Virus record (IMG/VR): IMGVR_UViG_3300023174_000039
Span: 186,001 to 250,000 of that record
Length of the DNA: 64,000 bases
Strand: one strand, 5' to 3'
Shown piece after piece: positions 29,177 through 41,511 of the stretch; the first letter of the stretch is position 1; each line of letters starts with the position of its first letter. A program made the translations under genes and the position numbers. The notes under the pieces were generated by a model that was not told the origin of the DNA, ran no database searches, and saw only the letters and a program-made list of their open reading frames with translations.

Positions 29177-29599
29177 ATGAAACACTCTATTCTATTAGAC
29201 AATGGGTCATACCTGCAGGTCAATGACATGGGTTTCTATGAGCGCAAGGCTCCTAGACAGTACAAGAATCTAGCAGAAGCCCAGCACCATTTACAATGGG
29301 GCATTGCCATGTGCCACACCAATGTCAAACTCAGAACAGACTATATTGCAATCTATCATCGAGATAAAACTAAATTTGAAAAGGCTGTTGCCAAAGAACA
29401 GGCCCTTATCAAACAGCTAGAGACACAACCTTATAACAAGGTAGCAGATCAAATTAAGAAGGCTCACTTTAATATTGATCAACTCACTGTCAAGTTTTAT
29501 CCCAAAAGCCGGCTTGCAGATTTCAAACGTGATACCAAGTTCCTTGCAAGTGCCAAAAGAGTACTTGCCAACAACCCTAGAGTTGTTCCTTTAGGTTGA
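29177..29599 (+). CDS. Early hypothetical protein
   Basis: TAAGGAG SD; 140 aa. Confidence 0.75.
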   Translation: MKHSILLDNGSYLQVNDMGFYERKAPRQYKNLAEAQHHLQWGIAMCHTNVKLRTDYIAIYHRDKTKFEKAVAKEQALIKQLETQPYNKVADQIKKAHFNIDQLTVKFYPKSRLADFKRDTKFLASAKRVLANNPRVVPLG

Positions 29600-29624
29600 C
29601 CAAAAAGAGACGATTTGCTATAAT
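29596..29624 (+). promoter_or_regulatory. Sigma70 early promoter
   Basis: TTGACC-17-TATAAT with TG extension. Confidence 0.82.
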
Positions 29625-29648
29625 ACAAGCATAGTAAAAACAAAGGAG

Positions 29649-29885
29649 ATGACAATGATTAAAGAACACGCACAATCCAGTTACTACGACGAACGTCACG
29701 GCGGTCCTTACGATCGCGGCGTTTGTGACAGCTACTACGGTCGTGACTATTGGCCCCATTACTTTGTGAGAGACACTCACAAAAGTCCTAGAATTGACAT
29801 AGATCAAATGACTGACGCAGAAGTTGCGGCCTACGCCGCTGGCTATCGTAATAACGAAGCTACCGGCGACAAAAAGGAGTGGTAA
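29649..29885 (+). CDS. Early hypothetical protein
   Basis: AAGGAG SD; HGGPYDRGVCDSYYGR. Confidence 0.78.
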   Translation: MTMIKEHAQSSYYDERHGGPYDRGVCDSYYGRDYWPHYFVRDTHKSPRIDIDQMTDAEVAAYAAGYRNNEATGDKKEW

Positions 29886-29887
29886 AA

Positions 29888-30292
29888 ATGACAATGCCAG
29901 CAGGACGATATTACATTGGTGACTTGTGCTATGTCATGCACCCGGAATGGGACGAGGCATGTGCCATGTTCTTTCCACCTCGGCACGAAGGTCGTGGTAT
30001 AGAGGGTGAGTTTGTCTTGAAGGATGGCCGACGGTTTGCCAGCTTTGGCACAGCCTGGGGTGATGGCACATACAACAGCAACATTGGTACTGAACACATG
30101 GTAGACTCAGGCTCTATTGGCTGTATCCAAATTGAAGATATCCGTGACACCACTTATAATGATCTTGAGCAATTGGGTGCCATTGTAGATTTTACACAAC
30201 CATTCGAAGTCAGAAAAGTAAGCCTAGGCCTACTCAGATTTGGACATGTGGATATTGAAACGGACGCTGACTATGACAAAGAATATTGCTAA
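29888..30292 (+). CDS. Early hypothetical protein
   Basis: AGGAG SD; GRYYIGDLCYV and VDSGSIGCI. Confidence 0.78.
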   Translation: MTMPAGRYYIGDLCYVMHPEWDEACAMFFPPRHEGRGIEGEFVLKDGRRFASFGTAWGDGTYNSNIGTEHMVDSGSIGCIQIEDIRDTTYNDLEQLGAIVDFTQPFEVRKVSLGLLRFGHVDIETDADYDKEYC

Positions 30293-30593
30293 GTTAGTTG
30301 ACAACGGTAAAGTGGCAGTGCTATACAGCCCGGGATTCGGTGCAGGCTGGAGTACTTGGAATCGTGGAGTGCCAGAAATTGTATTTGATCCTGCTATTGT
30401 GAAATTTATAGAACATGATCAAATGGCAGAGTTAAACACTTATGTTACCCTCAAGTATCCAGGACTCTACACAGGTGGCATGACAAGCCTGTCAGTGGCT
30501 TGGGTATCAGTGGGTACCGAGTTTCGAATCAAAGAATACGACGGTGCCGAAAGCATTGAACTAAAAGAAGAAATAAATTGGATAACCGCATGA
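30273..30593 (+). CDS. Conserved phage hypothetical protein
   Basis: VAVLYSPGFGAGWSTW; FRIKEYDGAESI. Confidence 0.78.
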   Translation: MTKNIAKLVDNGKVAVLYSPGFGAGWSTWNRGVPEIVFDPAIVKFIEHDQMAELNTYVTLKYPGLYTGGMTSLSVAWVSVGTEFRIKEYDGAESIELKEEINWITA

Positions 30594-30712
30594 AACGAGC
30601 AGACTTTGGCCGACTGGCCTGGACATCTTACAGATATGAGGCTCTTGCGCCCGAGATCACAGACTTCACAGAAGCTCGGGCTGTGATTGCTTACATCAAG
30701 TCCTTGTTATGA
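30590..30712 (+). CDS. 40-aa hypothetical protein
   Basis: Below the track cutoff; ATGA overlaps on both sides. Confidence 0.55.
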   Translation: MKRADFGRLAWTSYRYEALAPEITDFTEARAVIAYIKSLL

Positions 30713-30834
30713 AAGTGATTGTAAACTCCGCCGAGACCGTTGTACTTCCTTGGGAAGAAGGTCTCCTAGAATGGTTGCAGGAACACTATCCTTATAGTCG
30801 GTATCAGGTGGTAGAGATCCGCCAAATGGGTTGA
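30709..30834 (+). CDS. 41-aa hypothetical protein
   Basis: MKVIVNSAETVVLPWEEGLLEWLQEHYPYSRYQVVEIRQMG; ATGA overlap. Confidence 0.55.
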   Translation: MKVIVNSAETVVLPWEEGLLEWLQEHYPYSRYQVVEIRQMG

Positions 30835-30859
30835 CTATAAATAGTTTTCCTTGTACAAT
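30831..30859 (+). promoter_or_regulatory. Sigma70 promoter with nested TATAAATA, upstream of tRNAs
   Basis: TTGACT 30831-36, TATAAATA 30836-43, TACAAT 30854-59. Confidence 0.72.
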
Positions 30860-30867
30860 AAAACAAT

Positions 30868-30942
30868 GCGCCTATAGCTTAATGGTAAAGCAGGGGACTC
30901 ATAATCCCTTGAGTCGTGGTTCGATCCCACGTGGGCGCACCA
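30868..30942 (+). tRNA. tRNA with CAT anticodon, probably tRNA-Ile2 (lysidine type)
   Basis: Cloverleaf with GGGGA-ctCATaa-TCCCT and encoded CCA; anticodon arm resembles Ile2. Confidence 0.85.
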
Positions 30943-30947
30943 TTTTT

Positions 30948-31022
30948 CTGGCCATAGTATAATGGATAATACAGTAGCCTTCTAAGCTATCAATCTAGGT
31001 TCGATTCCTAGTGGCCGGACCA
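30948..31022 (+). tRNA. tRNA-Arg(TCT)
   Basis: GTAGC-ctTCTaa-GCTAT; TTCGA T-loop; CCA. Confidence 0.92.
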
Positions 31023-31056
31023 AGCTCTGTTAAATAACAGACACTAGGAGAGCACT

Positions 31057-31218
31057 ATGGCTTCATTTATCACAGCAGTAAAATCGGCATTGGAAAAAAA
31101 GCATGCCGCACAACATCCTGATGCAAAACCCGTCAAAGGTTCCAAGTCAGTTAAAAAACCAACAGCACCACAGCCAGTGGGTAAACCTGTTAAAAAGGTC
31201 ACTGGCCGGGGCGGATAA
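31057..31218 (+). CDS. 53-aa Lys/Pro-rich basic protein between tRNAs
   Basis: TAAATA at 31031, AGGAG SD; MASFITAVKSALEKKHAAQHPDAKPVKGSKSVKKPTAPQPVGKPVKKVTGRGG. Confidence 0.7.
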   Translation: MASFITAVKSALEKKHAAQHPDAKPVKGSKSVKKPTAPQPVGKPVKKVTGRGG

Positions 31219-31225
31219 CGCACAA

Positions 31226-31309
31226 GCGAGTGTGGGGGAATAGGTAGACCCAGCAGACTTAAAATCTGCCGCGTAATGCGTACCGGTTCGATTCCGGTCA
31301 CTCGTACCA
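31226..31309 (+). tRNA. tRNA-Leu(TAA)
   Basis: GCAGA-ctTAAaa-TCTGC; variable arm; CCA. Confidence 0.93.
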
Positions 31310-31318
31310 TTTTATATC

Positions 31319-31876
31319 ATGACCAAGATAAACAGTAGCCCCGATCGACACACCTTTCAAAAAGAAGGTTATGTTAAACGCTGTGAGGAACAAGGCAAGT
31401 TGCCTAATCCTGACTATGTTGAAATGTACAAAACCTGGCGTGAACAAGATGCGGCAAATCTTGTGGATCCCGAGTGGCAAAACAACAACATGGAGTACGA
31501 CCTGCGTAGTACCAAATGGATCTGCGACAAAGTCAAGGCCAGCGACAGCTATGCTCAAAATCTGTATGCAGCCATGTGCAACATGCAATTTGTAAAAAAC
31601 GAAGTATGGCCTTTGCTCAAGGACCAACGCTGGAGTGCCAGTTGGCGCAGTGCTGGAGGCATTGTGGCTGACATGCATGAACAAGGTGACTATATTGACT
31701 GGTACTGTTCGGGCATTGGTGGCATGATGGGAGGCGGTAGTGAGTCCAGTCCAGCAACAGAAGCAGCCTTGCTGGCCAGAAAAAACTATGTGCCAGAGGG
31801 CACTGTCACTGATGAGATCCGAGCAGACTTATTTCAACTGGGATGGATTCCAAAAGAGTGGGACAGTGATGAGTGA
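31319..31876 (+). CDS. Conserved phage hypothetical protein
   Basis: YAQNLYAAMCN...WSASWRSAGGIVADM...YIDWYCSG. Confidence 0.8.
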   Translation: MTKINSSPDRHTFQKEGYVKRCEEQGKLPNPDYVEMYKTWREQDAANLVDPEWQNNNMEYDLRSTKWICDKVKASDSYAQNLYAAMCNMQFVKNEVWPLLKDQRWSASWRSAGGIVADMHEQGDYIDWYCSGIGGMMGGGSESSPATEAALLARKNYVPEGTVTDEIRADLFQLGWIPKEWDSDE

Positions 31877-32507
31877 CCATACCTATTATAAAAAACTCAA
31901 CTTGCCGGCTAACCCGTTAAAGGACAGCCGAGCGGTGTCTCAGATGTCGATCACTGGTGTTTATGACATAGTAGAACCCCATGCGATTCTAACAGATGAA
32001 ATACTTTCTATCTTTGACAGTCTTGAGTTGCGTGTGAAAATGGTTGCATTGTTTGGTCGTATGGACGGTACTTCTACCAAACATGATAGACTGATACATG
32101 CTGACCTTTACAAAAACAATGCTGATGTGCGTGGATGGTCAAAACTGGTAGCCGGCGTGAATTGGGAGATCGAAGGGTCGCACAATGTTTTTTATTGGTA
32201 TGACATGTCAAAACTTGACGAGCACTGGCCGCCTGTAGTGGGATCAGGTACATCAAAGTATGATTTGTTGAATGGCATACACTACGGACAACGTGGCAAT
32301 CACGGAGTTTATCCCGAGCAGGCAGTGGTACTAGAACACACCACCATTGACGGTCCCACACTAGTGAGAACTGACATTCCACACTCGACATTGTATCACA
32401 ATCCCAACACATACCGAGTGGGGGTCAGTGTTAGATTTTTTGAAGAAGACTTTGATCACAATTGGGAAACAGTATTGGCAAAGTTTCAACCAGTGTTTCT
32501 CAAATAA
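31869..32507 (+). CDS. Hypothetical protein
   Basis: Likely start MSDHTYY at 31869, overlapping the upstream stop. Confidence 0.68.
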   Translation: MSDHTYYKKLNLPANPLKDSRAVSQMSITGVYDIVEPHAILTDEILSIFDSLELRVKMVALFGRMDGTSTKHDRLIHADLYKNNADVRGWSKLVAGVNWEIEGSHNVFYWYDMSKLDEHWPPVVGSGTSKYDLLNGIHYGQRGNHGVYPEQAVVLEHTTIDGPTLVRTDIPHSTLYHNPNTYRVGVSVRFFEEDFDHNWETVLAKFQPVFLK

Positions 32508-32510
32508 ATA

Positions 32511-32580
32511 AGAGTTAAGACTGTATGAAGTTGACAGAAAAGGATTCAAGACCCGGGGGCAGTTCCCGGCAGGTCCACCA
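32511..32580 (+). ncRNA. ssrA: Permuted tmRNA, acceptor (3') piece; 5' end approximate
   Basis: GATTCAA-GAC-CCGGG-GGCAGTT-CCCGG-CAGGTCC-ACCA gives the T arm and 3' acceptor strand. TAAATA promoter at 32505-10. Confidence 0.9.
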
Positions 32581-32603
32581 TAAGGAGATTGAATAAATAC
32601 TAG

Positions 32604-32909
32604 ATGCGAATAAAAGAACTGACTGAATCATTTAACAAGTGCTATGATATGGCATGTAAAATGTATGATTACGCAAAGGCTAAAAATTTGCATCCTAAAC
32701 TAATACAAGTAGCAGATTATAAAGGCGATGGTTCCGGTGCTGATAAACGCTGGCAAAAACTACCGCAAAGAGTGTGGCAACATTATGTCACAGTAATCGG
32801 CAATAAAGTCTACGATCCAACTGCTAAACAGTTTGGTCCTGACAACGATACTGAATATAGTTTAGAAAGATTAGATGCTGACTGGGGACAACAGTATCTA
32901 ATTAAATAA
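32604..32909 (+). CDS. 101-aa protein encoded inside the tmRNA intervening segment; possible Cys-His-Asp (papain/transglutaminase-like) fold
   Basis: KCYDMA...QHYVTVIGNKVYDPTAKQF; TAAGGAG at 32581 and TAAATA at 32594-99. Confidence 0.75.
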   Translation: MRIKELTESFNKCYDMACKMYDYAKAKNLHPKLIQVADYKGDGSGADKRWQKLPQRVWQHYVTVIGNKVYDPTAKQFGPDNDTEYSLERLDADWGQQYLIK

Positions 32910-32922
32910 GTCTTTTTATGAT

Positions 32923-33105
32923 GGGCCTGACATAGATATCGATTGGGTCAAGAGTACGGAAATGGACAGTCCGGCAATGTAGAAGCCGTTAGGGTTGGGG
33001 GAACTTGGCCGAAGACACAAAAACCGTAAATGCAAACGACGAACAGTTCGCTTTAGCCGCCTAAACTCGGCTTAGGGTAGGAAATACCTCGTAACAGAAA
33101 CCACC
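32923..33105 (+). ncRNA. ssrA: Permuted tmRNA, coding (5') piece with tag ANDEQFALAA
   Basis: GGGCCTG pairs with CAGGTCC and includes G3:U70. GTAAAT-GCA resume site. Tag ORF 33032-33064 is GCA AAC GAC GAA CAG TTC GCT TTA GCC GCC TAA. Confidence 0.92.
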
Positions 33106-33133
33106 AAAAAAGGGCACTTTGGTGCCCTTTTTC
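33106..33133 (+). terminator. Intrinsic terminator, bidirectional
   Basis: AAAAAAGGGCAC-tttg-GTGCCCTTTTTT. Confidence 0.9.
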
Positions 33134-33192
33134 TTTGACTTCTTAGTATAAACGCTATATACTAGTTGATATTCATTTTATAAGGAAAAATA

Positions 33193-34086
33193 ATGACAAC
33201 AACAATTACAATCAAGGACAAAGCAGTAAACACAACATATCAAAATGTCACAGGGTTGACAGGTGGCTCAGGCGACGGCGCCGCATTTGATGTTACCAAG
33301 ACCAATGGTGTTTATTCCGTTGTGTTAGACGCATTGGCAGCCAGTGCTGGCCGCAACTATGTGGCAGGTGATACTATTACTCTTGCTGGCACAGCACTGG
33401 GTGGTACAAGTGCCAACAACTTGATCGTCACAGTGGGCACAGTTGGTACTGCCGGTAAGATTGCTACATTTGGTGTAGTGGGCACAGGCCGTGTTGGCGA
33501 TGGCACAGTAGACGTACAAGTTGATGTTACTGGTACCAGTGGCATTGACACTTATACTGTAGGTGGTGCCAGTACAGAGTACACAACAACCAAGACCGCA
33601 AGTGCAGTTACATTGGCCAGTTCACTGGTCAGCAATTTAGAAATTAAACTTGCTGATCACGAGCGTGTGGTGTTCACAGACAAAGCCATTGCATATGATG
33701 CCGCAGGCCGTGCAGGTGATGTATATGCATTGTTGGCAGCCGCACTTGGTGTTAGTGATGTTACTCGAGCCTACGAAGGCATTGGCATCTATCTTGCAGA
33801 TGCAGGTTGGACCAACAAACAATTGGCCACTGCATTGTTGGCCACTGATACATACAAGGCCGACGCCGGTGGTGTCAGTGACGAAACATTCATCAAGCAT
33901 GTTTATAAAAATGTCACAGGTACCACTGCCACAATCGCAGATGTTACTGCATTAACAAACTGGATGACTGCCAACAAGTACAGTCAAGCAGATGTACTGG
34001 TCATTGCCAGCGAATTGCCAGCATTTGAAACAGCAATTGGCCTGGTTGGATTGGCAACAACTGGCATTGAATATACTCCTGTATAA
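33193..34086 (+). CDS. S-layer/RTX-associated-like protein with a C-terminal DUF4214-like domain
   Basis: Thr/Gly/Ala/Val-rich beta region, then DHERVVFTDKAIAYDAAGRAGDVYALL...SDETFIKHVYKNV. Own promoter TTGACT 33136/TATACT 33159 and TAAGGA SD. Confidence 0.72.
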   Translation: MTTTITIKDKAVNTTYQNVTGLTGGSGDGAAFDVTKTNGVYSVVLDALAASAGRNYVAGDTITLAGTALGGTSANNLIVTVGTVGTAGKIATFGVVGTGRVGDGTVDVQVDVTGTSGIDTYTVGGASTEYTTTKTASAVTLASSLVSNLEIKLADHERVVFTDKAIAYDAAGRAGDVYALLAAALGVSDVTRAYEGIGIYLADAGWTNKQLATALLATDTYKADAGGVSDETFIKHVYKNVTGTTATIADVTALTNWMTANKYSQADVLVIASELPAFETAIGLVGLATTGIEYTPV

Positions 34087-34102
34087 TACAACCGGCCCAG
34101 AC

Positions 34103-34129
34103 AAAAAGGCTGTTTTCACAGCCTTTTTT
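34103..34129 (+). terminator. Intrinsic terminator
   Basis: AAAAAGGCTGT-tttc-ACAGCCTTTTT. Confidence 0.9.
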
Positions 34130-34202
34130 GTTGATTAAATGTAAACATCGCTATATAATATAGATTGACTACCAAGTCAATTTAAACAAGGAAATTTAAA
34201 AA

Positions 34203-34742
34203 ATGAAAAAATTTGCATTCGCATCACTCTTGGCTTTGGCCTCTTTCGCTTCTTCTGCACAGTATGTGTCAGTTGATGTGGACCATGTAAAGACCAGTCG
34301 TGGTCAGGAAAGTTCTGCACAGTACATCCGTGCTGGCAAAACCATCAGTGGCATTGACTACGGTCTCCAAAGCCGCACAGGTGTTGGCAACAAAGGTGGC
34401 ATGTTCAACAGCCTAGAAGTCACAGCTGGCAGCAAACTGGGTTCTTTCGCGCCGTTCGTGGGCGTGGGCTATGACAATGGCTTTAACGGTTCACCTGCTG
34501 GTTCATACACATATGGCTTGTTGGGCGTAACAACTGGTGCCAAGGTTGGTCCAGGTTTTGCATTTGGTGGTGTCAAGACTCGACTGGGTTCTAGTGCCAA
34601 AGTAGAAACAAAACAAACAGTGGCGTTTGGTACTTACAGTTTACCCATTGCCAAGAACCTTGCACTCAACGTGAATGCAAGCAAGAGCTACCAAGACATC
34701 AAAGAAACAGCTTATGGTGTTGGCCTAGCGTTTGGGTTTTAA
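34203..34742 (+). CDS. Small outer-membrane beta-barrel (porin-like) protein
   Basis: Sec signal MKKFAFASLLALASFASSA; alternating beta strands; C-terminal YGVGLAFGF fits a BAM signal ending in Phe. Confidence 0.8.
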   Translation: MKKFAFASLLALASFASSAQYVSVDVDHVKTSRGQESSAQYIRAGKTISGIDYGLQSRTGVGNKGGMFNSLEVTAGSKLGSFAPFVGVGYDNGFNGSPAGSYTYGLLGVTTGAKVGPGFAFGGVKTRLGSSAKVETKQTVAFGTYSLPIAKNLALNVNASKSYQDIKETAYGVGLAFGF

Positions 34743-34768
34743 ATGTAATACTTAATAGTTACATTTAC

Positions 34769-34795
34769 AAAAAACCCGCACTAGGCGGGTTTTTT
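34769..34795 (+). terminator. Intrinsic terminator
   Basis: AAAAAACCCGC-actag-GCGGGTTTTTT. Confidence 0.9.
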
Positions 34796-34803
34796 ATTGG
34801 CGG

Positions 34804-34930
34804 TTGACTGAATATTCTGAATTTGCTACAATAGAAACAAGTTAAGAAATACAGCAAAGTTTGCAAAGCCCTTATAAAGAAAAAGGACTTTGCAAAACAA
34901 GTTGACAAGTAAATCACAAGATGTTATACT
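34804..34930 (+). promoter_or_regulatory. Tandem sigma70 promoters of the main tRNA/ncRNA operon
   Basis: TTGACT 34804/TACAAT 34827 and TTGACA 34902/TATACT 34925, both with 17-nt spacers. Confidence 0.8.
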
Positions 34931-35017
34931 AGAGACTAGTTAGGAAATAGTAGATCGAGACTGTTTCAAGAGTTCGTTAAAAATTCAATTTTGTATAGTA
35001 CTCGGATCCAATCCGGG

Positions 35018-35260
35018 CACTATATGTAAGCACATTGGGTTACCGCCCCAGTAGGTAATTTGACAAGAGATCAATCTGTGGCCGCACAGACTCTTCCAAG
35101 TTACATGAAAGATGGAAACGAAGCCGCAAGGTGGATACTGTATAATCGCGCTGGACCAGGTAGGCCTGTAATGTGTTTGACAAACAAGTCCGTGGACGAC
35201 ACGGTAGGGCAGAAAAAACTGCGATCTTTGTCCGACATCCTGATGTGTTTTCATATAGTG
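35018..35260 (+). ncRNA. Structured spacer RNA A
   Basis: Terminal helix CACTATATG/CATATAGTG plus AAGCACATT/GATGTGTTT; internal hairpins such as TCTGTG-gccg-CACAGA. Confidence 0.6.
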
Positions 35261-35267
35261 ATTTTTT

Positions 35268-35343
35268 GGTCTTAAAGTGTTCATGGACGCACGATGGCTT
35301 GTCACGCCATAAGAGTGGGGATCGTTACCCCCTAAGACCGCCA
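35268..35343 (+). tRNA. tRNA-Asp(GTC)
   Basis: ATGGC-ttGTCac-GCCAT; atypical T-loop ATCGTTA; CCA. Confidence 0.88.
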
Positions 35344-35349
35344 ACATTT

Positions 35350-35412
35350 GAGAGCCACTACGCCTGGATACTTCCCTCGCAAGAGGCACTAGGTCCTGCA
35401 ACCGTGGCTCTC
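35350..35412 (+). ncRNA. Small structured spacer B
   Basis: GAGAGCCAC/GTGGCTCTC 9-bp closing helix; CCTC-gcaa-GAGG hairpin. Confidence 0.5.
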
Positions 35413-35420
35413 CCTTATTT

Positions 35421-35496
35421 GCTCGGTTCATCTAGCGGTCTAGGATAGTGCCCTTTCACGGCATTCACACGGGTTCGAATCCCGTACCGAGCTCCA
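35421..35496 (+). tRNA. tRNA-Glu(TTC)
   Basis: GTGCC-ctTTCac-GGCAT; CCA. Confidence 0.93.
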
Positions 35497-35501
35497 CACA
35501 T

Positions 35502-35586
35502 GGAGATGCCGCCGCAATGGTGTGGCAGGGGACTGTAACTCCTCCGACTTCGGTCACGATAGGTTCGATCCCTATCATCTCCACCA
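35502..35586 (+). tRNA. tRNA-Tyr(GTA)
   Basis: ctGTAac loop; variable arm GAC-ttcg-GTC; CCA. Confidence 0.88.
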
Positions 35587-35590
35587 GAAC

Positions 35591-35778
35591 GTTCCGGGTG
35601 TCTCCGGATAGTCAGACCCTGACGATGAGAAGTAGTGTGACAACTACGGGTGGTAGTCTTCAAACCCAAAGGCCGCTAGCAATGCGAGAACGGTCCCTGT
35701 CGGGAAGCGGGTGGAAGGAGTATGTGATGGATACGATAGCGTCGTATCTTGATACTCTACAATTACCGCCGGGGGATG
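35591..35778 (+). ncRNA. GC-rich structured spacer RNA C
   Basis: Hairpins TCCGG/CCGGA, GTCAG/TGAC and GTAGT/ACTAC; nested GCGGGT..GGAGTAT..GATACGA/TCGTATC..ATACTCT..ACCGC. Confidence 0.6.
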
Positions 35779-35791
35779 CAGAGCATGTTTG

Positions 35792-35949
35792 TTTTTATAG
35801 TCAAGCATCGATAAAGGTATCGTGACAGGACGCTGTCACTATTCGGGCCTAACTGTGCGAGGAACAGGTCCTGACATAACTGCCATTCGCTTGTCAGAGC
35901 TAGCTACTTTGTTGACAAATCGGCATCTCTCGGTGCTTGACTATAAAAA
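35792..35949 (+). ncRNA. Structured spacer RNA D
   Basis: 20-bp terminal helix TTTTTATAGTCAAGCATCGA/TCGGTGCTTGACTATAAAAA with one G-U pair. Confidence 0.65.
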
Positions 35950-35952
35950 TAC

Positions 35953-36030
35953 GCACAGGTGGCAGAGTGGTCCAATGCACGGGATTGCAAATCCTGAAAG
36001 CCGTGAGTTCAAATCTCACCCTGTGCTCCA
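35953..36030 (+). tRNA. tRNA-Cys(GCA)
   Basis: ttGCAaa loop; U discriminator; CCA. Confidence 0.9.
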
Positions 36031-36034
36031 GTTT

Positions 36035-36228
36035 TTATATTGATAACAGTGTGTTAAAAACTCTTTGACCAAGGGCCCAACTGCTAGGGAATTATTGATC
36101 CAAAAACCGCTGAGCGGACGAAAGTTGCGGCGGACTGCTAGTCACAGTCACACATGTTTTTGGAAGGATGCTGGTGTAGCAATACAGCAGGGACCTTTAA
36201 ACACACAGCAGTATTGTTATCAATATAA
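36035..36228 (+). ncRNA. Structured spacer RNA E
   Basis: 14-bp perfect helix TTATATTGATAACA/TGTTATCAATATAA, then GTGTGTTAAA/TTTAAACACAC. Confidence 0.65.
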
Positions 36229-36235
36229 GTACTAC

Positions 36236-36310
36236 CGCGGGGTGGAGAAGTAGTAACTCATCAGGCTCATAACCTGAAGATCGGCGGTGCGAATCCGTCC
36301 CCCGCATCCA
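36236..36310 (+). tRNA. Initiator-like tRNA-Met(CAT)
   Basis: C1:A72 mismatch; CGCGGGG 5' end; TCAGG-ctCATaa-CCTGA. Confidence 0.85.
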
Positions 36311-36326
36311 ATTTTACCATTTGTGG

Positions 36327-36355
36327 TTGACTTTCAATCATAAATAAACTACAAT
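36327..36355 (+). promoter_or_regulatory. Sigma70 promoter with nested TAAATA
   Basis: TTGACT 36327-32, 17 nt spacer, TACAAT 36350-55; TAAATA at 36341-46. Confidence 0.75.
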
Positions 36356-36365
36356 AGAAACTAAC

Positions 36366-36479
36366 ATGAAAACACAAAACTATTCATTTGCTAAGCCATC
36401 CATGTTTGTCCAGCCTTCAGCCTGGACGCATGCGAACGGTCGCGTGAATAGCATTCCAGGAGATCCGGGGTCCGTGTAA
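36366..36479 (+). CDS. Putative 37-aa leader peptide
   Basis: MKTQNYSFAKPSMFVQPSAWTHANGRVNSIPGDPGSV; starts about 10 nt after the -10 box and precedes the terminator/antiterminator. Confidence 0.55.
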   Translation: MKTQNYSFAKPSMFVQPSAWTHANGRVNSIPGDPGSV

Positions 36480-36504
36480 AGTACATTAGTATTCTACTCA
36501 AAGG

Positions 36505-36538
36505 ACCCTGGAACTAAACACTCCAGGGTTTTTCTTTT
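36505..36538 (+). terminator. Intrinsic terminator with an overlapping antiterminator
   Basis: ACCCTGGA/TCCAGGGT plus TTTTCTTTT; alternative pairing GGGGTCC 36467-73 with GGACCCT 36503-09. Confidence 0.82.
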
Positions 36539-36629
36539 AGTGCAATGGCAACGAGAGCCGGCATCACTCAAAACTGCAAATGGGCGGCCTGTAGGATGGA
36601 ACACTATTTGTAGTGTGAAAAATTACAGC

Positions 36630-36685
36630 GTATTAAAGCATTCTTTAAGAACAGGCAGCCTAAGTATTTTAGAGTGCTTTAATAC
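36630..36685 (+). ncRNA. Long hairpin spacer F
   Basis: 15-bp stem GTATTAAAGCATTCT/AGAGTGCTTTAATAC. Confidence 0.55.
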
Positions 36686-36708
36686 ACACATTCGTAAGAG
36701 TGTGTCGG

Positions 36709-36782
36709 GTATCTCTGGTGTAATGGCAGCACCGCGGTCTCCAAAACCGTCAGTCAAGGTTCGAGTCCTTGGAGGTACGCCA
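36709..36782 (+). tRNA. tRNA-Trp(CCA)
   Basis: GCGGT-ctCCAaa-ACCGT; CCA end. Confidence 0.92.
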
Positions 36783-36787
36783 CACAT

Positions 36788-36861
36788 GGGCTGGTAGTTA
36801 AATGGGATAACGGTGGCTTTGCAAGCCTCAGTTGGGAGTTCGATTCTCCCTCGGTCCACCA
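36788..36861 (+). tRNA. tRNA-Ala(TGC)
   Basis: ttTGCaa loop; G3:U70. Confidence 0.92.
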
Positions 36862-36869
36862 AATTAAAT

Positions 36870-36898
36870 TTGACACAACCGTGTGTCTGCTATATAAT
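36870..36898 (+). promoter_or_regulatory. Sigma70 promoter
   Basis: TTGACA-17-TATAAT. Confidence 0.82.
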
Positions 36899-36905
36899 AG
36901 CATGT

Positions 36906-36995
36906 CGAGAGCGGGCAGGACGGTAATGCAGCGGATTGCTAATCCGTAGACCGTAGTAATACGGTCACTGGGTTCGACTCCCAGGCTCTCGGCCA
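36906..36995 (+). tRNA. tRNA-Ser(GCT)
   Basis: GCGGA-ttGCTaa-TCCGT; long variable arm. Confidence 0.92.
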
Positions 36996-37006
36996 CATCA
37001 ATCAAT

Positions 37007-37082
37007 TCCCTAGTAGCTCAGTCGGTAGAGTAGCAGACTGTTAATCTGTTGGTCACACGTTCGAACCGTGTCTGGGGAGCCA
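37007..37082 (+). tRNA. tRNA-Asn(GTT)
   Basis: GCAGA-ctGTTaa-TCTGT. Confidence 0.93.
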
Positions 37083-37087
37083 AACAA

Positions 37088-37163
37088 GCCCTTATAGCTC
37101 AGCTGGTAGAGCAACTGATTTGTAATCAGTAGGTCCCGTGTTCGAATCATGGTGGGGGCACCA
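37088..37163 (+). tRNA. tRNA-Thr(TGT)
   Basis: ACTGA-ttTGTaa-TCAGT. Confidence 0.93.
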
Positions 37164-37166
37164 ATC

Positions 37167-37242
37167 GCTCTCATAGCTCTAGTGGTAGAGCATACCCTTG
37201 GTAAGGGTAAGGTCACGTGTTCGAATCACGTTGAGAGCACCA
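37167..37242 (+). tRNA. tRNA-Thr(GGT)
   Basis: TACCC-ttGGTaa-GGGTA. Confidence 0.93.
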
Positions 37243-37251
37243 ATTCATTTC

Positions 37252-37328
37252 AGCTTCATAGCTCAGTTGGTTAGAGCACCGTGTTGATAACGCGGGGGTC
37301 CTGTGTTCGAGTCACAGTGAAGCTACCA
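37252..37328 (+). tRNA. tRNA-Ile(GAT)
   Basis: CCGTG-ttGATaa-CGCGG. Confidence 0.93.
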
Positions 37329-37379
37329 AATTTTTAAAGGAGAGTCCCTATGGACAGTGATAAGAGTGGGAAGATTTGT

Positions 37380-37455
37380 GGGACGTTAGCTCAGTTGGTA
37401 GAGCAGTAGACTTTTAATCTATTGGTCATTGGTTCAAATCCAATACGTCCTACCA
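37380..37455 (+). tRNA. tRNA-Lys(TTT)
   Basis: GTAGA-ctTTTaa-TCTAT. Confidence 0.93.
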
Positions 37456-37524
37456 TATAAAAACACACTTGGTATGCCCATAGCATACAGAGACATCAGA
37501 AACGTGAGTGTGTTTCTATATGGT
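37452..37524 (+). ncRNA. Structured spacer G linking tRNA-Lys and tRNA-His
   Basis: ACCATATA/TATATGGT plus AAACACACT/AGTGTGTTT. Confidence 0.6.
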
Positions 37525-37598
37525 GCTTGTCGTCAAGCGGTTAAGACCTCGGATTGTGATTCCGATATACGTGGGTTCGAATCCCATCAAGCACCCCA
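37522..37598 (+). tRNA. tRNA-His(GTG)
   Basis: G-1:C73; TCGGA-ttGTGat-TCCGA. Confidence 0.93.
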
Positions 37599-37599
37599 T

Positions 37600-37674
37600 G
37601 GATGTATAGCACAGCGGTAGTGCATCTCCTTCATACGGAGCAGGTCAGTAGTTCAAATCTACTTACATCCACCA
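37600..37674 (+). tRNA. tRNA with CAT anticodon, probably elongator Met
   Basis: CTCC-ttCATac-GGAG; fully paired acceptor stem; CCA. Confidence 0.82.
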
Positions 37675-37685
37675 TAACATTTTGT

Positions 37686-37759
37686 TGGGGGTTAGTTAAA
37701 TGGTATAACATCGGATTTTGATTCCGAGATCACAAGTTCGATTCTTGTACCCTCTGCCA
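37686..37759 (+). tRNA. tRNA-Gln(TTG)
   Basis: TCGGA-ttTTGat-TCCGA; unpaired 1:72. Confidence 0.9.
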
Positions 37760-37764
37760 CATAT

Positions 37765-37841
37765 CGGTCCTTAACTCAATTGGATAGAGTGCCAGTCTTC
37801 GAAACTGGAAGTTGGGAGTTCGACTCTCTCAGGACCGGCCA
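37765..37841 (+). tRNA. tRNA-Arg(TCG)
   Basis: CCAGT-ctTCGaa-ACTGG. Confidence 0.92.
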
Positions 37842-37880
37842 GTTTTTAACCTTGTATAATACTAGCCTATAAATATTTCC

Positions 37881-38642
37881 ATGAAGAAAGCACTTATACT
37901 TGGATGTAGTCATGCCGCTGGTTCAGAAATGATTGATGAGCCAGAAATTGATTTGTTAAACTATGGCAAAGACTACTATGGATACTGTATGAGTTATCCC
38001 TCACAGTTGGCACAATTGTTGGGGTACCATCCCGTAAATCATGCTATCCCTGGTGGTAGCAATGATGCAATGTTTAGAATATTTGAATCGTTTGTCAACC
38101 CTTACAAGAACTTTGAAAAGCCTGACATTGTGTTTGTATGTTGGACCGGTGGCGAACGTACCGAGGTATGGGACTTTGAAGAAGGCAACTGGATTGGCCT
38201 TGCTGGCGGTAAAACTAATTTTACAAAAACAATTCCTGATAGTGTTATACGGGAAGGGAAAATTATTCCTGAACCTATTATTAACGCCGATAACATTGTT
38301 ACATATCAAAAACAATGGATCACTCATCATGCTGATCGCTGGTGGGGTCGATTGAACAAGTTAAAAAACATACTGGCACTGAACACCATGGCAGCTCAAG
38401 AGAAGATCCCGGTTATTAATCTTGATAGTTTTGGTGCAGTGCAAGAATACACATTTCCCGACACAGTATATCGTCCCTTGGGACAAACTGAGTTTTGTAA
38501 CTGGGCGGTCGAGCGTGGATTCAACAACACCAAGTCGGGACATTACTTTTTGCAAGCACACAGAAGTTTTGCAAACTTCATTGCCAAAAAAGTTGATCCA
38601 AAGTATCATGCAGATAACATCGGAAAGATCATAACAGAATAA
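37881..38642 (+). CDS. SGNH/GDSL-like protein inside the tRNA array
   Basis: LILGCSH, NHAIPGGSN, SGHYFLQAH; TATAAATA ends 5 nt before the ATG. Confidence 0.7.
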   Translation: MKKALILGCSHAAGSEMIDEPEIDLLNYGKDYYGYCMSYPSQLAQLLGYHPVNHAIPGGSNDAMFRIFESFVNPYKNFEKPDIVFVCWTGGERTEVWDFEEGNWIGLAGGKTNFTKTIPDSVIREGKIIPEPIINADNIVTYQKQWITHHADRWWGRLNKLKNILALNTMAAQEKIPVINLDSFGAVQEYTFPDTVYRPLGQTEFCNWAVERGFNNTKSGHYFLQAHRSFANFIAKKVDPKYHADNIGKIITE

Positions 38643-38646
38643 TAAT

Positions 38647-38720
38647 GCGGGGCTCGTATAGTGGTAATACCTTAGCCTTCCAAGCTAAAGCGAGGGGTTC
38701 GATTCCCCTGCCCCGCTCCA
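38647..38720 (+). tRNA. tRNA-Gly(TCC)
   Basis: TTAGC-ctTCCaa-GCTAA. Confidence 0.93.
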
Positions 38721-38726
38721 CTTATT

Positions 38727-38802
38727 GCGCGGTTAACTCAGTCGGTAGAGTTCTTGCCTTACACGCAGGCTGTCGGCGGTTCGAGCCCGTCACCGCGCAC
38801 CA
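38727..38802 (+). tRNA. tRNA-Val(TAC)
   Basis: CTTGC-ctTACac-GCAGG. Confidence 0.93.
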
Positions 38803-38808
38803 CACATT

Positions 38809-38885
38809 CGGAGTGTAGCACAGCCTGGTAGTGCGCCTGGTTTGGGACCAGGAGGTCGTAGGTTCGAATCCTACTATTCCGACCA
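38809..38885 (+). tRNA. tRNA-Pro(TGG)
   Basis: CCTGG-ttTGGga-CCAGG. Confidence 0.93.
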
Positions 38886-38892
38886 CCTTTTT

Positions 38893-38984
38893 GGAAGATG
38901 ATGCAGTGGGGTTGGTCCCGCGACTGGCCTTGAAAACCAGGTTCTCTTAACAGGGATGGGGTTCGACTCCTCCGTCTTCCGCCA
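38893..38984 (+). tRNA. tRNA-Ser(TGA)
   Basis: ctTGAaa loop; long variable arm; G discriminator. Confidence 0.88.
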
Positions 38985-39028
38985 AATTAATTGACACCGC
39001 AGATGTTGTGTGTTATTATGATAGTTAG

Positions 39029-39113
39029 GCCCAGGTGGCGAAATTGGTAGACGCACCAGATTTAGGTTCTGGCGTAGAAATATGTGTCGGTTCGAGTCCG
39101 ACCCTGGGCACCA
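39029..39113 (+). tRNA. tRNA-Leu(TAG)
   Basis: CCAGA-ttTAGgt-TCTGG; variable arm. Confidence 0.93.
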
Positions 39114-39116
39114 TTT

Positions 39117-39283
39117 TGCAAACAAAAAAACGTATAGGGGTAAAACCCCAGTGGCTCTGCGCAGTGATGTGCATCTGCTGGTTCAGTTGTCTGGATGAGA
39201 GGTCCTGATTGTTGCCGGTGTAGAGTTAATCTATTAACGATTAGCGTACAAATACCCGCCCTAGCGAAACCGGTTTGTTTGCA
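39117..39283 (+). ncRNA. Structured spacer RNA H after the last tRNA
   Basis: TGCAAACAAA/TTTGTTTGCA 10-bp terminal helix; GGGGT-aaa-ACCCC hairpin. Confidence 0.55.
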
Positions 39284-39336
39284 TTTTTAACACAATTGTA
39301 ATCTCAGCTTCAATAAATACCCATAGAAAGCAATGT

Positions 39337-39816
39337 ATGAAAAAACTAGATCTCAACAAGGTCAAACAATTTATTGAAGCACAAGGTCCAGAAACAAAAA
39401 TCTATCTCGGGTGTGACAGCGAAAGACTCAGGGTCAACAATGTATGGCATGCTGACTATGTGTTGGCTATTGTGGTGCACATTAACGGCAACAACGGATG
39501 TAAAATCTTTGGGGAAGTACACAGAGAACGAGTGTATGATCAACGAGAATCTAAACCTGCCATGCGCTTGATGACCGAGGTGTACAAAGTGTCCGAGCTG
39601 TATCTAAAATTAGCCGAAGTGCTAGAAGGACGCAACGTAGAGGTTCACTTGGACATCAATCCAGATGAAATGCACGGTTCAAGCTGTGTTATTAGTCAAG
39701 CAATAGGATATATCAAAGGCACTTGCAATGTTGTACCTTTTGTGAAACCCAATGCATTTGCTGCCAGCTACGCCGCAGACAGGTTTAAAAGCCTAAGAAC
39801 AGCACAACACAGCTAG
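39337..39816 (+). CDS. YkuK/DUF458 RNase H-like protein
   Basis: IYLGCDS...RLMTEVYK...VEVHLDIN. Confidence 0.85.
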   Translation: MKKLDLNKVKQFIEAQGPETKIYLGCDSERLRVNNVWHADYVLAIVVHINGNNGCKIFGEVHRERVYDQRESKPAMRLMTEVYKVSELYLKLAEVLEGRNVEVHLDINPDEMHGSSCVISQAIGYIKGTCNVVPFVKPNAFAASYAADRFKSLRTAQHS

Positions 39817-39848
39817 TCATATAAATAAATGTATTAGGAGACACTACA

Positions 39849-40082
39849 ATGCGTTATACAACAGTAATCTGGGAACCACCAACAACACCCGAGCAAATAA
39901 CTCAGCTTGATGCAAAAATTGCCGACATGGAGGCTCGAGGTATTTTTTCAGAGCTGACATTAACAAACGAGGGCACACGACAAGTTGCCATCCGTTCATG
40001 GCCAGAGTTGACCAATGCCGAAGAATGGTGTGATTTTACTTTAAACATTGGCTGTTCTAGTGCCAGTATTGATCCAGTGTAA
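39849..40082 (+). CDS. Small hypothetical protein
   Basis: TATAAATA promoter and TAGGAG SD; 77 aa. Confidence 0.72.
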   Translation: MRYTTVIWEPPTTPEQITQLDAKIADMEARGIFSELTLTNEGTRQVAIRSWPELTNAEEWCDFTLNIGCSSASIDPV

Positions 40083-40354
40083 TGACCGGGCACATCAAAT
40101 ACTATAGAATAAAAATAACAAAAAAACTCATCCAAGAAGCTACAAATCACAGGAACAAACTGCTGTCTGAACTAATAGAACATGCAACAGATCCTGTGAT
40201 TTTTAAACGTCGGCTACGGCTATTGGCACAGCTCTCTGAGCTAGAATTTCAACTTTTAACAAAAATACAGTCGTTTGAAACAGACAATGTAGATGACTTT
40301 GATCTGCAAATCTTGTTCAATGAATTTAGACACGTTACCAATCGCAGTTCATAA
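40082..40354 (+). CDS. Hypothetical protein
   Basis: Coupled by TAATG; 90 aa. Confidence 0.65.
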   Translation: MTGHIKYYRIKITKKLIQEATNHRNKLLSELIEHATDPVIFKRRLRLLAQLSELEFQLLTKIQSFETDNVDDFDLQILFNEFRHVTNRSS

Positions 40355-41511
40355 TGACTTCACCTTTGCTGACAGCAATTAATCCCAACTACATTGGAAA
40401 AATACTAGACTGGCACAATATTTCACATGTGCCCGTAGGGAACTTGAAAAAAATCAACGGGTTTACCAATCACAACCATCTAGTGGATATCAATGCTGTA
40501 TTTTCTACATTTCCTCACGGAGATATTGTTGATCGAACTAGCACGGTTCCAAATCCGTTCAAGTTTAAAATACAGAGACCATGGAGTATTCCTACATCAT
40601 ACAAATCGTTTGATCATGTCATGGAACATAGAGTCAAAGAATATCTTGCTCAGGATCAATTGCTAAACTTGTGTTGGAGCGGCGGACACGATAGTACTAG
40701 TCTTGTGATTGCATTTTTAAAACATACTCCTAATTTTGATCAGTTGAGAATTTTATACTCACCACACAGCACATACGAGAACAGAGAATTTTTTGAATTC
40801 TTACAAAAAAATTATCCGCAACTGGACCTGCTAGACATCAGTGGAGAAGTTTATCTAAACACACAATTTGATGGACATGTTATTACCGGGCACGGCGGCG
40901 ATGAATTTACAGCCAGCCTTGACGGATCTTTTGTTGACAAAATTGGCATTGATGCCTTGTACGGCTCTTGGAAAGATTATTTTCATACGGCCAATCAAAG
41001 TCAAAGCCTGATAGATTTTGCAGAAATGTATTTTGCACAGTCTGGTAAATCTATTAATACGTTACTAGAAGCCAGGTGGTGTTATTACAGCCTGGCCAAA
41101 AGCCAAATCTATGCAATCACCGACAACTCATTCTTGGCCAATCAAGCTTCATACACCGAACAGTCAATGAGTGGGTTCTTTGAATGCAAAGACTTTGAAA
41201 ATTACATGTATCACAATCTTGATCAGATTCTTGACCGTCGATACGGATACCTAGGATACAAACAATTCCTCAAAGAATACATTTATGAATTTGACAAGAA
41301 CGAAAACTACTATACCAATGCTGGTAAACAAAATAGTATTCAGTTCAGTGCTTATATCAACAAGAAAATTCGCCTGCTTGACCTAAGATGGATATTTAAG
41401 TTAAGCGACAGCACAATTGTGAGAACAAAAAATTTACCTTTCTTAAGTCGTATAGAATTTGATAATGCATACGGAAACAGCCTTGACTACTTATTCAACT
41501 CACCAGGTTAA
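40354..41511 (+). CDS. PP-loop ATP pyrophosphatase (asparagine-synthetase-like C-terminal fold)
   Basis: LCWSGGHDSTS; ITGHGGDE. Confidence 0.78.
   Translation: MTSPLLTAINPNYIGKILDWHNISHVPVGNLKKINGFTNHNHLVDINAVFSTFPHGDIVDRTSTVPNPFKFKIQRPWSIPTSYKSFDHVMEHRVKEYLAQDQLLNLCWSGGHDSTSLVIAFLKHTPNFDQLRILYSPHSTYENREFFEFLQKNYPQLDLLDISGEVYLNTQFDGHVITGHGGDEFTASLDGSFVDKIGIDALYGSWKDYFHTANQSQSLIDFAEMYFAQSGKSINTLLEARWCYYSLAKSQIYAITDNSFLANQASYTEQSMSGFFECKDFENYMYHNLDQILDRRYGYLGYKQFLKEYIYEFDKNENYYTNAGKQNSIQFSAYINKKIRLLDLRWIFKLSDSTIVRTKNLPFLSRIEFDNAYGNSLDYLFNSPG

Follow-up and report, generated by a model that had tools for sequence, protein, structure and literature searches.

A conserved structured RNA in the tRNA arrays of uncultured freshwater jumbo phages

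A spacer within the tRNA array of the virus record IMGVR_UViG_3300023174_000039 contains an RNA element whose sequence and specific fold are conserved across more than 100 contigs of uncultured freshwater jumbo phages. Our preferred reading is that the element belongs to an uncatalogued family of small stable phage RNAs that is cut from the tRNA precursor by host enzymes and acts in trans. We assign this reading a probability of roughly 0.5, with the release inferred from gene layout and the trans role speculative.

Results

Genomic context of the RNA element

The window, which is the whole stretch of DNA that was analyzed (64,000 nucleotides), represents bases 186001-250000 of a 331,654-bp IMG/VR virus record with an estimated completeness of 95%. 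The gene content of this record includes a family-B DNA polymerase, several radical-SAM enzymes, sugar-nucleotide enzymes, ThyX and a MoxR/VWA pair. No close cultured phage was identified by blastn, which returned only short matches to cyanophage sugar-nucleotide epimerase genes and to tRNA-Glu. When positions 35400-36100 were compared by blastn with 50,697 phage records, tRNA-Glu alone was matched.

The genome possesses 24 tRNA genes, all of which are located on the + strand at window positions 30868-39113 and are separated by spacers of up to ~800 bp. Between tRNA-Tyr (35502-35586) and tRNA-Cys (35953-36030) lies a spacer of 366 bases, of which the first 200 make up the RNA element; the element starts one base past the CCA of tRNA-Tyr. 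Its 3' neighbor in the window is a second conserved module of 160 nt at 35790-35950, and no tRNA is present there. Analysis of loci fetched via two neighboring proteins revealed two modules in the spacer, a conserved one at bases 1-203 and a second at bases 204-364 that moves independently. We also observed that other spacers of the array are conserved and structured, namely 35344-35420 and the second module at 35790-35950. A consensus scan identified three sigma-70-like promoter matches upstream of the element. Inferred from sequence alone, these sites could possibly drive a transcript comprising tRNA-Asp, tRNA-Glu, tRNA-Tyr and the element. No terminator-like site was found on the + strand in a consensus scan of positions 34128-40000. 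The features of this region were as follows.

34804-34832, + strand: sigma-70-like promoter match (consensus scan only; function not shown)
34902-34930, + strand: sigma-70-like promoter match (consensus scan only; function not shown)
35232-35259, + strand: sigma-70-like promoter match (consensus scan only; function not shown)
35502-35586, + strand: tRNA-Tyr, anticodon GUA, encoded CCA (ARAGORN; Rfam tRNA, 33.3 bits), the upstream neighbor of the RNA element
35588-35789, + strand: whole RNA unit, consisting of the conserved core 35588-35786 and a U-rich end (nhmmer, covariance model R1)

Extent of the element and distribution of its homologues

The unit at 35588-35789 scored 232 bits (E about 5e-86), with model positions 1-202 covered (nhmmer, covariance model R1). 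The conserved unit extends from AACGU at 35588 to GCAGAGCAU at 35778-35786. By nhmmer a unit of ~201 nt was delimited (35588-35788), together with 11 distinct relatives, some of which carried insertions of 40-80 nt. The G+C content of the element was 0.53, compared with 0.39-0.49 in 2-kb bins of the window and ~44% around the element. A first-pass annotation, made without database searches, had proposed a GC-rich RNA at 35591-35778; its claim of a G+C content above the surroundings (0.53 versus 0.39-0.49) held, and its limits held in part, being a few bases short at both ends. Only one copy was detected by covariance model R1 in the tRNA region of the window (28000-42000), and blastn within the 331-kb genome revealed no match besides the element itself.

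Homologues were collected from IMG/VR by two scans, one with an exact 20-mer from the core and one with an independent anchor in the 5' domain. Each returned at least 119 rows. The 5'-anchor scan contributed 67 new loci, all of which lacked the core 20-mer. In total, 138 distinct copies were assembled from both scans, on contigs of up to 524 kb, and the length of the element ranged from 186 to 282 nt in 78 homologues. The sequencing runs that contained the stretch were nearly all from freshwater, lake or river metagenomes. Among 185,579 prokaryote species (one genome each), the 20-mer identified a single true copy. This copy resides on a 23-kb contig binned with a Haliscomenobacter MAG and has the same phage-like layout of tRNA and tmRNA genes. 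Exact 20-mer matches in an NC10 MAG and a Bradyrhizobium genome were dismissed as chance; they possessed no other features of the element and no Rfam family.

The element is not universal among related phages. When covariance model R1 was applied to 5 other large related records, the element was found in one of the five. One of the records without it is a complete 169-kb genome, and the element is thus dispensable for at least some relatives. In more distant relatives (loci retrieved via a neighboring 179-aa protein), no element was present within 6 kb. An apparent second, diverged copy upstream in two relatives (L232 and L200; 33 and 21 bits with model R1) was rejected, as it represents only a 57-nt duplicate of the 5' module; in both loci this duplicate is followed by a 178-codon GIY-YIG-like ORF.

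Searches with Rfam 15 across the window identified tRNAs as the only families to reach the gathering score; RNase P, SRP, 6S, tmRNA, introns, GOLLD, ROOL, T-box, riboswitches and ribozymes were all included in this search. At E values up to 10 around the element, only a sub-threshold match to tmRNA_permuted overlapped it, and at E values up to 5 in four diverse relatives (L135, L078, L163 and L188) nothing was found over the element. The first-pass annotation had described the RNA as unlike RNase P, SRP, 6S and introns, which held, with no match in Rfam 15. It had further stated that a match to a known family, or protein-level conservation revealing a CDS, would refute it: no family matched at the gathering score in Rfam 15, and no reading frame was conserved.

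Covariation supports a specific fold

The single-sequence minimum free energy of the element was -68.4 kcal/mol (z = -1.08), and 24 of 200 dinucleotide shuffles folded equally well. The single-sequence fold is within chance; hairpins by themselves are therefore no proof, and what decides the matter is comparison among homologues. Across the 138 homologues, the 43 proposed pairs were 97.4% paired, with double compensatory changes in 35 of them (939 cells). For slid controls, in which the partners were shifted by 1-3 positions, only 33-50% were paired and double changes were present in 9-19 pairs (39-129 cells). Conservation of 97% or more was observed at 40 of the 202 positions, many of which are unpaired.

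The first RNAalifold consensus was built from sequences selected for the invariant core (the core 20-mer). It was 99.2% paired, displayed compensatory changes in 24 of 36 pairs, and beat 500 of 500 column shuffles and all slid controls, yet it was partly wrong. Two of its helices, 35649-35654 with 35765-35770 and 35696-35700 with 35707-35711, were refuted by the second homologue set: in these 5'-anchored sequences the pair 35651-35768 was U.U in 7 copies and the pair 35699-35708 was G.A in 7. Alignment A4, which contained this second, independently 5'-anchored set, introduced variation into the core, and with it the fold was settled. Two further readings were rejected. The pairing of 35693-35697 with 35773-35777 is not a pseudoknot but the base of a nested arm, and the pairing of the 5' CGU (35590-35592) with ACG (35690-35692) fits most copies but is uncompensated where it varies.

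The first-pass annotation had also claimed a structured multi-stem RNA after tRNA-Tyr and had suggested covariation analysis as a check. The claim held, with the fold now backed by covariation (compensatory double changes in 35 of 43 pairs). The three nested arms that it named (GCGGGT, GGAGTAT and GATACGA) held as well, all with covariation support (35707-35710 with 35766-35769; 35717-35722 with 35753-35758; 35730-35736 with 35742-35748). Its nested long stem came closer to the settled fold than did the first RNAalifold consensus, in which GGGUGGU was paired with ACCGCC.

The 5' half is a chain of hairpins with a kissing-loop contact

The 5' half of the element is a chain of five short hairpins (H1, H2, H3, H5 and H6), and the loops of H1 and H3 kiss. 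Its parts were as follows.

35593-35608, + strand: hairpin H1, 35593-35597 paired with 35604-35608, loop containing GUC at 35600-35602 (double changes in 5 of 5 pairs; 99.4% of cells paired)
35600-35641, + strand: kissing-loop contact of H1 loop 35600-35602 with H3 loop 35639-35641 (covariation)
35611-35623, + strand: hairpin H2, 35611-35615 paired with 35619-35623, ACC loop at 35616-35618 (double changes in 4 of 5 pairs)
35624-35631, + strand: conserved joining strand GAUGAGAA (conservation profile)
35632-35647, + strand: hairpin H3, 35632-35636 paired with 35643-35647, loop GUGACA (double changes in 4 of 5 pairs)
35648-35654, + strand: invariant GGGUGGU strand (97% or more conserved in 138 copies)
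35656-35673, + strand: hairpin H5, 35656-35660 paired with 35669-35673, 8-nt loop with invariant ACC at 35664-35666 (double changes in 4 of 5 pairs)
35674-35690, + strand: hairpin H6, 35674-35676 paired with 35684-35686, conserved 7-nt loop UAGCAAU (covariation)

The kissing pair 35600-35641 was G-C in 85 copies, A-U in 37 and G-U in 7, and the pairs 35601-35640 and 35602-35639 were 90-93% paired. In a sub-family with a wholly recoded 5' domain, the complementarity of the H1 and H3 loops was kept via other letters, ACG with CGU. In H6, the pair 35676-35684 was C-G in 49-50 copies and U-A in 27 of 76 (A2 rows) and 28 of 80 (A3 rows). The lone pair 35683-35690 also covaried, being U-A in 126 copies and C-G in 9. 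Some relatives contained 40-80 extra bases that form one or two hairpins immediately 5' of H5. No pairing partner was found for the joining strand at 35624-35631.

The ACC of the H2 loop resides within a near-invariant GACCC (97% or more conserved). The GGGUGGU strand may be a docking site at which the H2 loop (through its ACCC) and the H5 loop (through its ACC) lie next to each other; this contact is inferred, not shown, and its covariation is thin. Variation at the proposed docking site was limited to 3 copies, in which three substitutions occurred jointly: U35651 to C, A35616 to G and A35664 to G.

The 3' half is a long nested arm followed by a conserved tail

The 3' half of the element, listed below, consists of nested helices interrupted by conserved internal loops.

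35693-35777, + strand: long nested 3' arm (covariation in P-a, P-b and H8a)
35693-35698 with 35772-35777, + strand: P-a (double changes in 6 of 6 pairs)
35699-35706, + strand: conserved 8-nt/2-nt internal loop
35707-35710 with 35766-35769, + strand: P-b (covariation)
35711-35716 opposite 35759-35765, + strand: second conserved internal loop, GUGGAA opposite ACAAUUA
35717-35722 with 35753-35758, + strand: H8a (double changes in 5 of 6 pairs)
35723-35752, + strand: k-turn-like module, a 3-nt bulge at 35723-35725 followed by tandem G.A/A.G, U.U and G-Y
35730-35736 with 35742-35748, + strand: variable distal hairpin inside the k-turn-like module
35778-35786, + strand: conserved 3' tail GCAGAGCAU (conservation profile)

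At the base of the arm, the P-a pair 35694-35776 was U-A in 91 copies, A-U in 26, U-G in 8 and G-C in 3, and P-a was extended to 9 bp in one sub-family. The P-b pair 35708-35768 was C-G in 117 copies, U-A in 8 and A-U in 7. The pairs of the k-turn-like module are G.A 35726-35752, A.G 35727-35751, U.U 35728-35750 and G-Y 35729-35749; the last of these was G-U in 42 copies, G-C in 22 and U-A in 10. A box-C/D-like k-turn signature, RUGAUG...YUGAU, was present in the window and in 48 of 78 copies. This is a signature in the letters only, and a kinked geometry is inferred. Other copies replace the k-turn-like arm, and the module is thus peripheral. In many copies a U-rich run follows the tail.

The element lies among tRNA genes and may be released with them

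The element was always located on the tRNA strand inside a tRNA array, and its position within the array varied. In 78 of 128 copies it started no more than 5 nt from the end of the upstream tRNA. This tRNA was Tyr in 40 copies and Ser-GCU in 15, and Asp, Asn, Arg, Glu, Cys or Met in the remainder (eight kinds). A downstream tRNA began no more than 5 nt after the end of the element in 36 of 128 copies, and in three loci (L123, L135 and L163) tRNAs abut both ends.

We inferred that the element is co-transcribed with the tRNAs. Metatranscriptome contigs from four studies covered the element or close relatives, one of which, 336 nt in length, spanned 35578-35786. These data consist of contigs only, with no information on ends or strand, and DNA carry-over is possible. 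Metatranscriptome contigs of 88-90 nt corresponded exactly to tRNA-Tyr, so mature small RNAs were probably captured. Peaks in metatranscriptome depth partly reflect conservation, as more relatives map there.

The element lies on the tRNA strand, and its ends very often fall at those of tRNAs. The simplest mechanism would thus make the RNA a passenger of a polycistronic tRNA precursor, freed by the tRNA-processing nucleases of the host. Its 5' end would be generated by 3'-end maturation of the preceding CCA-bearing tRNA, and its 3' end by RNase P cleaving where the following tRNA, or the following spacer module, begins. This mechanism is inferred. In the window the 3' neighbor is the spacer module at 35790-35950 and not a tRNA, so RNase P cannot directly set the 3' end here.

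Discussion

A trans-acting RNA as the preferred reading

Following release, the compactly folded RNA may act in trans during infection by binding a macromolecule tied to tRNA use or translation. Candidate partners would be the ribosome, a tRNA-processing enzyme or a tRNA-targeting enzyme, with the invariant unpaired bases forming a binding surface or a tertiary core; each of these proposals is speculative. We infer from the compact tertiary contacts and the invariance of unpaired strands that a binding surface or an active site is more plausible than a spacer. The basis for a trans-acting, translation-related role is only context and analogy, and the analogues themselves have no known function. 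The 331-kb record contained no members of the L7Ae, TROVE (Ro60), RtcB and CCA-adding enzyme families. No enrichment of complements to the conserved single strands was seen in the phage genome; an apparent antisense excess of CATTGCTAG, at 7 sites, was rejected as it lies in unrelated coding contexts.

Alternative explanations

One alternative is that the RNA is a ribozyme that frees itself from the flanking tRNAs or acts on tRNA precursors or their 3' ends. We regard this as unlikely, and any such activity is hypothetical. In its favor, the element has ribozyme-like complexity for its size: it contains a kissing loop and probably loop-strand contacts, and 40 of its positions, many of them unpaired, are near-invariant. 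Its ends also adjoin those of tRNAs. RNase P and T-box RNAs use GGU-type strands to recognize the ACCA ends of tRNAs, and the invariant GGGUGGU of the element is comparable with such strands. However, no ribozyme family of Rfam 15 matched, the revised fold is nested without the long-range P1, P2 and P4 helices of RNase P, and the ends are explained by host RNase P and 3' processing with no need for self-cleavage.

A bolder form of this idea is that the element is a new catalytic or tRNA-end-recognizing RNA, with GGGUGGU and the ACC loops combining into a site that would recognize the 3'-terminal ACCA of tRNAs, in the manner of RNase P and T-box RNAs, or imitate it. We consider both the general proposal and this specific site improbable. 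If tRNA ends were read in this manner, a phage taking over host translation could use the RNA to process or protect tRNAs, to sense them or to sequester them; alternatively, the RNA could serve as a decoy for a host tRNA-targeting defense enzyme.

The element could instead be a cis-acting part of the tRNA precursor, such as a folding insulator, a processing enhancer or an RNA-polymerase antitermination element, that has no function after release. This rival is supported by the location of the element, always in tRNA arrays and on the tRNA strand, and by the conservation and structure of further array spacers (35344-35420 and 35790-35950). The proposal of Weinberg et al. that the proximity of GOLLD and ROOL to tRNAs may merely reflect co-transcription (PMC5737381) also favors it. 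Against it, a 200-nt fold with invariant unpaired strands far exceeds what spacing or a nuclease site would need, and an antiterminator would be expected at the start of an operon, whereas the place of the element in the array varies. Eight different tRNAs are found upstream of the element in different phages, which argues that it does not serve one particular tRNA. We judge a purely cis role unlikely.

Much less support remains for a ligand- or tRNA-sensing, riboswitch-like element that controls transcription of downstream tRNAs. Its conservation resembles that of aptamers, and a U-rich run follows the tail in many copies. The letters GGGUGGU...ACCGCC resemble T-box sequence, which is a lead only. 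In contrast to what this rival requires, Rfam contained no T-box or riboswitch match, no terminator-like hairpin was present nearby on the + strand, and the U-run is part of the helix that closes the following module (35793-35811 with 35931-35949). In addition, 36 copies have a tRNA starting no more than 5 nt behind them, which leaves no space for an expression platform, and the partner of ACCGCC is GCGG at 35707-35710 and not the GGGUGGU strand. We consider this explanation very unlikely.

A further rival, in which the element would be one part of a two-piece (permuted) tmRNA or of some other gene of tRNA origin, is all but excluded. The Rfam model tmRNA_permuted scored 22.7 bits (E = 0.01-0.04) over 35559-35780, and GGGGAUG at 35772-35778 matches the 3' acceptor strand of tRNA-Tyr by complementarity at 7 of 7 positions, the third pair being a G.U. 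Permuted tmRNA genes are also present in relatives, with ARAGORN calling tmRNA in 48 related loci. However, 22.7 bits is far under the gathering score of 47, and the match was carried by the T arm and CCA of tRNA-Tyr plus GGGGAUG. Behind other tRNAs the complementarity was only 1-6 of 7 positions, mostly 2-4, with the tail unchanged, and GGGGAU pairs instead with 35693-35698, with abundant covariation. The tmRNA genes of relatives are separate loci (for example, 14815-15148 in L104, where the element is at 3441-3642), and ARAGORN called no tmRNA in the window or the whole genome.

The weakest rival, a protein-coding function, rests on a 125-codon ORF at 35448-35825 that spans the element in the window, and can be all but dismissed: this ORF begins inside tRNA-Glu and crosses tRNA-Tyr, no frame was open in more than 17 of 78 homologues, the element lengths of 186-282 nt fell in every modulo-3 class (33, 31 and 14 copies), substitutions in helices were compensatory, and Pfam and PHROG gave no match.

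Comparison with known systems

The preferred reading, a small stable RNA released from a tRNA precursor and acting in trans, draws on two sets of analogues, T4 RNAC/RNAD and GOLLD/ROOL, which by analogy of layout are the closest. T4 RNAC and RNAD (the species 1 and 2 RNAs) are, like the element, small stable RNAs encoded within a phage tRNA cluster on the tRNA strand, although for the element stability is inferred. The T4 rnaD gene starts one base after tRNA-Arg and the element starts one base after tRNA-Tyr. The T4 array also holds a GIY-YIG homing endonuclease (segB), and a GIY-YIG-like ORF adjoins the element in two relatives. There are clear differences. At 119 and 139 nt the T4 RNAs are the smaller, and inspection by eye suggests a tRNA-like 3' part in each, with a T-arm-like hairpin and a CCA end, whereas the element has no tRNA-like part. 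When model R1 was applied to the T4 tRNA region with filters off, it scored no more than about 2 bits on rnaC and rnaD, indicating no homology. The function of RNAC and RNAD is unknown (PMC3014915, PMC9697503).

GOLLD and ROOL are, like the element, elaborately structured RNAs of phages and prophages that are often found near tRNA islands and are probably co-transcribed with tRNAs. At about 580 to over 800 nt they exceed the element (186-282 nt) three- to fourfold in size, and they assemble into multimeric cages. Their covariance models (Rfam 15) did not match the element or the relatives searched. Neither a protein partner nor a function is known for GOLLD and ROOL (PMC5737381; bioRxiv 10.1101/2024.12.08.627333).

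Other tRNA-linked RNAs are less similar. Permuted tmRNA is, like the element, a non-tRNA RNA gene of the same phage clade; in contrast, the element has no tRNA-like domain of its own, no tag frame and no conserved acceptor pairing. The element merely resembles RNase P and T-box RNAs, through its link to tRNA, its conserved GGU-type strands and its k-turn-like module. RNase P RNA is built around a P4 pseudoknot with CR-I/CR-V and long-range P1 and P2, none of which is found in the element, which also has no helix closing its 5' and 3' ends. The specifier and antiterminator architecture of T-box RNAs is missing as well, the element being a hairpin chain with one long arm.

We also considered whether the element had been reported previously. 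Fremin et al. 2023 bulk-predicted 8,495 candidate structured RNAs from IMG/VR by covariation (PMC10690425), and it is possible that their list contains the motif of the element. The text of that paper (PMC10690425) names no motif with the context of the element, and none is present in Rfam 15. No paper describing the element was found in searches of full-text literature.

Taken together, these comparisons place the element as a new family within a known kind, the structured phage RNAs in or beside tRNA islands, and as a member of none of the named families. Its discovery illustrates that annotation pipelines and Rfam miss abundant, highly conserved RNA genes of uncultured jumbo phages. Phage tRNA islands repeatedly house elaborate RNAs with unsolved roles, and T4 RNAC and RNAD have gone unexplained for fifty years. 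The element is a compact and well-defined family of this kind, with ~200 nt, more than 100 natural variants, a covariation-supported fold and clear domain boundaries, and its size suits chemical probing, crystallography, cryo-EM and expression in a bacterium. Solving one such RNA could reveal what tRNA-linked RNAs do for phages.

Spacer modules around the element

Complementarity to the upstream tRNA was examined at the GGGGAUG strand (35772-35778), which includes the 3' base of the long arm of the element (the structured RNA unit at window 35588-35789). It was complementary at 7/7 positions to the 3' strand of the tRNA-Tyr acceptor stem (35573-35579). Compared with the 5' strand of the tRNA itself it has a single base difference, which places a G.U at the third pair. 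The full 7/7 match was confined to element copies with tRNA-Tyr as the upstream neighbour. It may be a coincidence, a trace of the element's origin, or an alternative pairing in the precursor.

The following further spacers were identified in the tRNA array:

Window 35790-35950: second conserved spacer module, adjoining the element directly on its 3' side
Window 35344-35420: 77-nt spacer 3' of tRNA-Asp, with a long hairpin (GAGAGCCAC...GUGGCUCUC)
Window 34743-35267, 36031-36235 and 36311-36708: long non-coding spacers with promoter-like sites

In the second module, positions 35793-35811 pair with 35931-35949 in a long A+U-rich closing helix that encloses hairpins. In the related loci L078, L093 and L092 it was located between tRNA-Glu and tRNA-Asp rather than behind the element, and it therefore moves independently of the element. 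The module could be another processed RNA, or else a processing or promoter cassette. The 77-nt spacer was retained together with tRNA-Asp in L078 (3271-3341). In the same locus, an initiator-like tRNA-Met was recognized by eye directly 3' of the element (L078:3602-3683); ARAGORN made no call at this position.

Clade marker, tmRNA genes and possible host

Two protein-coding genes of the window bear on the phage clade and its possible host:

Window 39337-39816: RNase H-like protein (PF04308, phrog_11311), encoded at the margin of the tRNA array
Window 46620-47540: phage-encoded homologue of the TctC ('Bug') family of periplasmic receptors

The RNase H-like protein shared 74-95% identity across the best 80 of 494 related loci, and is therefore a handy marker for the phage clade. 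Permuted (two-piece) tmRNA genes were detected by ARAGORN in 48 related phage loci (including L006, L007, L012, L061, L104 and L255), the majority lying just upstream of a homologue of the window ORF at 34203-34742; their tags include ANDEQFALAA, ANDERFALAA and ANDDYFYQDLKLAA. No tmRNA gene was found by ARAGORN in the whole 331-kb record of the present phage.

Among species-representative genomes, the sole copy of the element was in L255 (NZ_JBBAKG010000090.1), a 23-kb contig of a Haliscomenobacter sp. MAG with a phage-like layout of tRNA and tmRNA genes. This is possibly a mis-binned phage contig, or possibly a hint at the host. The TctC homologue and the relatives' ANDE(R/Q)FALAA-type tags tentatively suggest a betaproteobacterial host.

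A GIY-YIG-like ORF beside element copies

An ORF of 178 codons, GIY-YIG-like at its N-terminus (YVYAYL...PYYIGKGK), was present in two related loci:

L200:1481-2017 (+)
L232:616-1152 (-)

Its match to NUMOD3 was weak (E = 0.002, below the cut-off). The ORF is flanked on one side by a duplicated copy, 57 nt long, of the 5' module of the element, and on the other by a full element, in which the 5' domain is recoded and its fold retained. The arrangement is reminiscent of segB, a GIY-YIG homing endonuclease gene within the tRNA cluster of T4.
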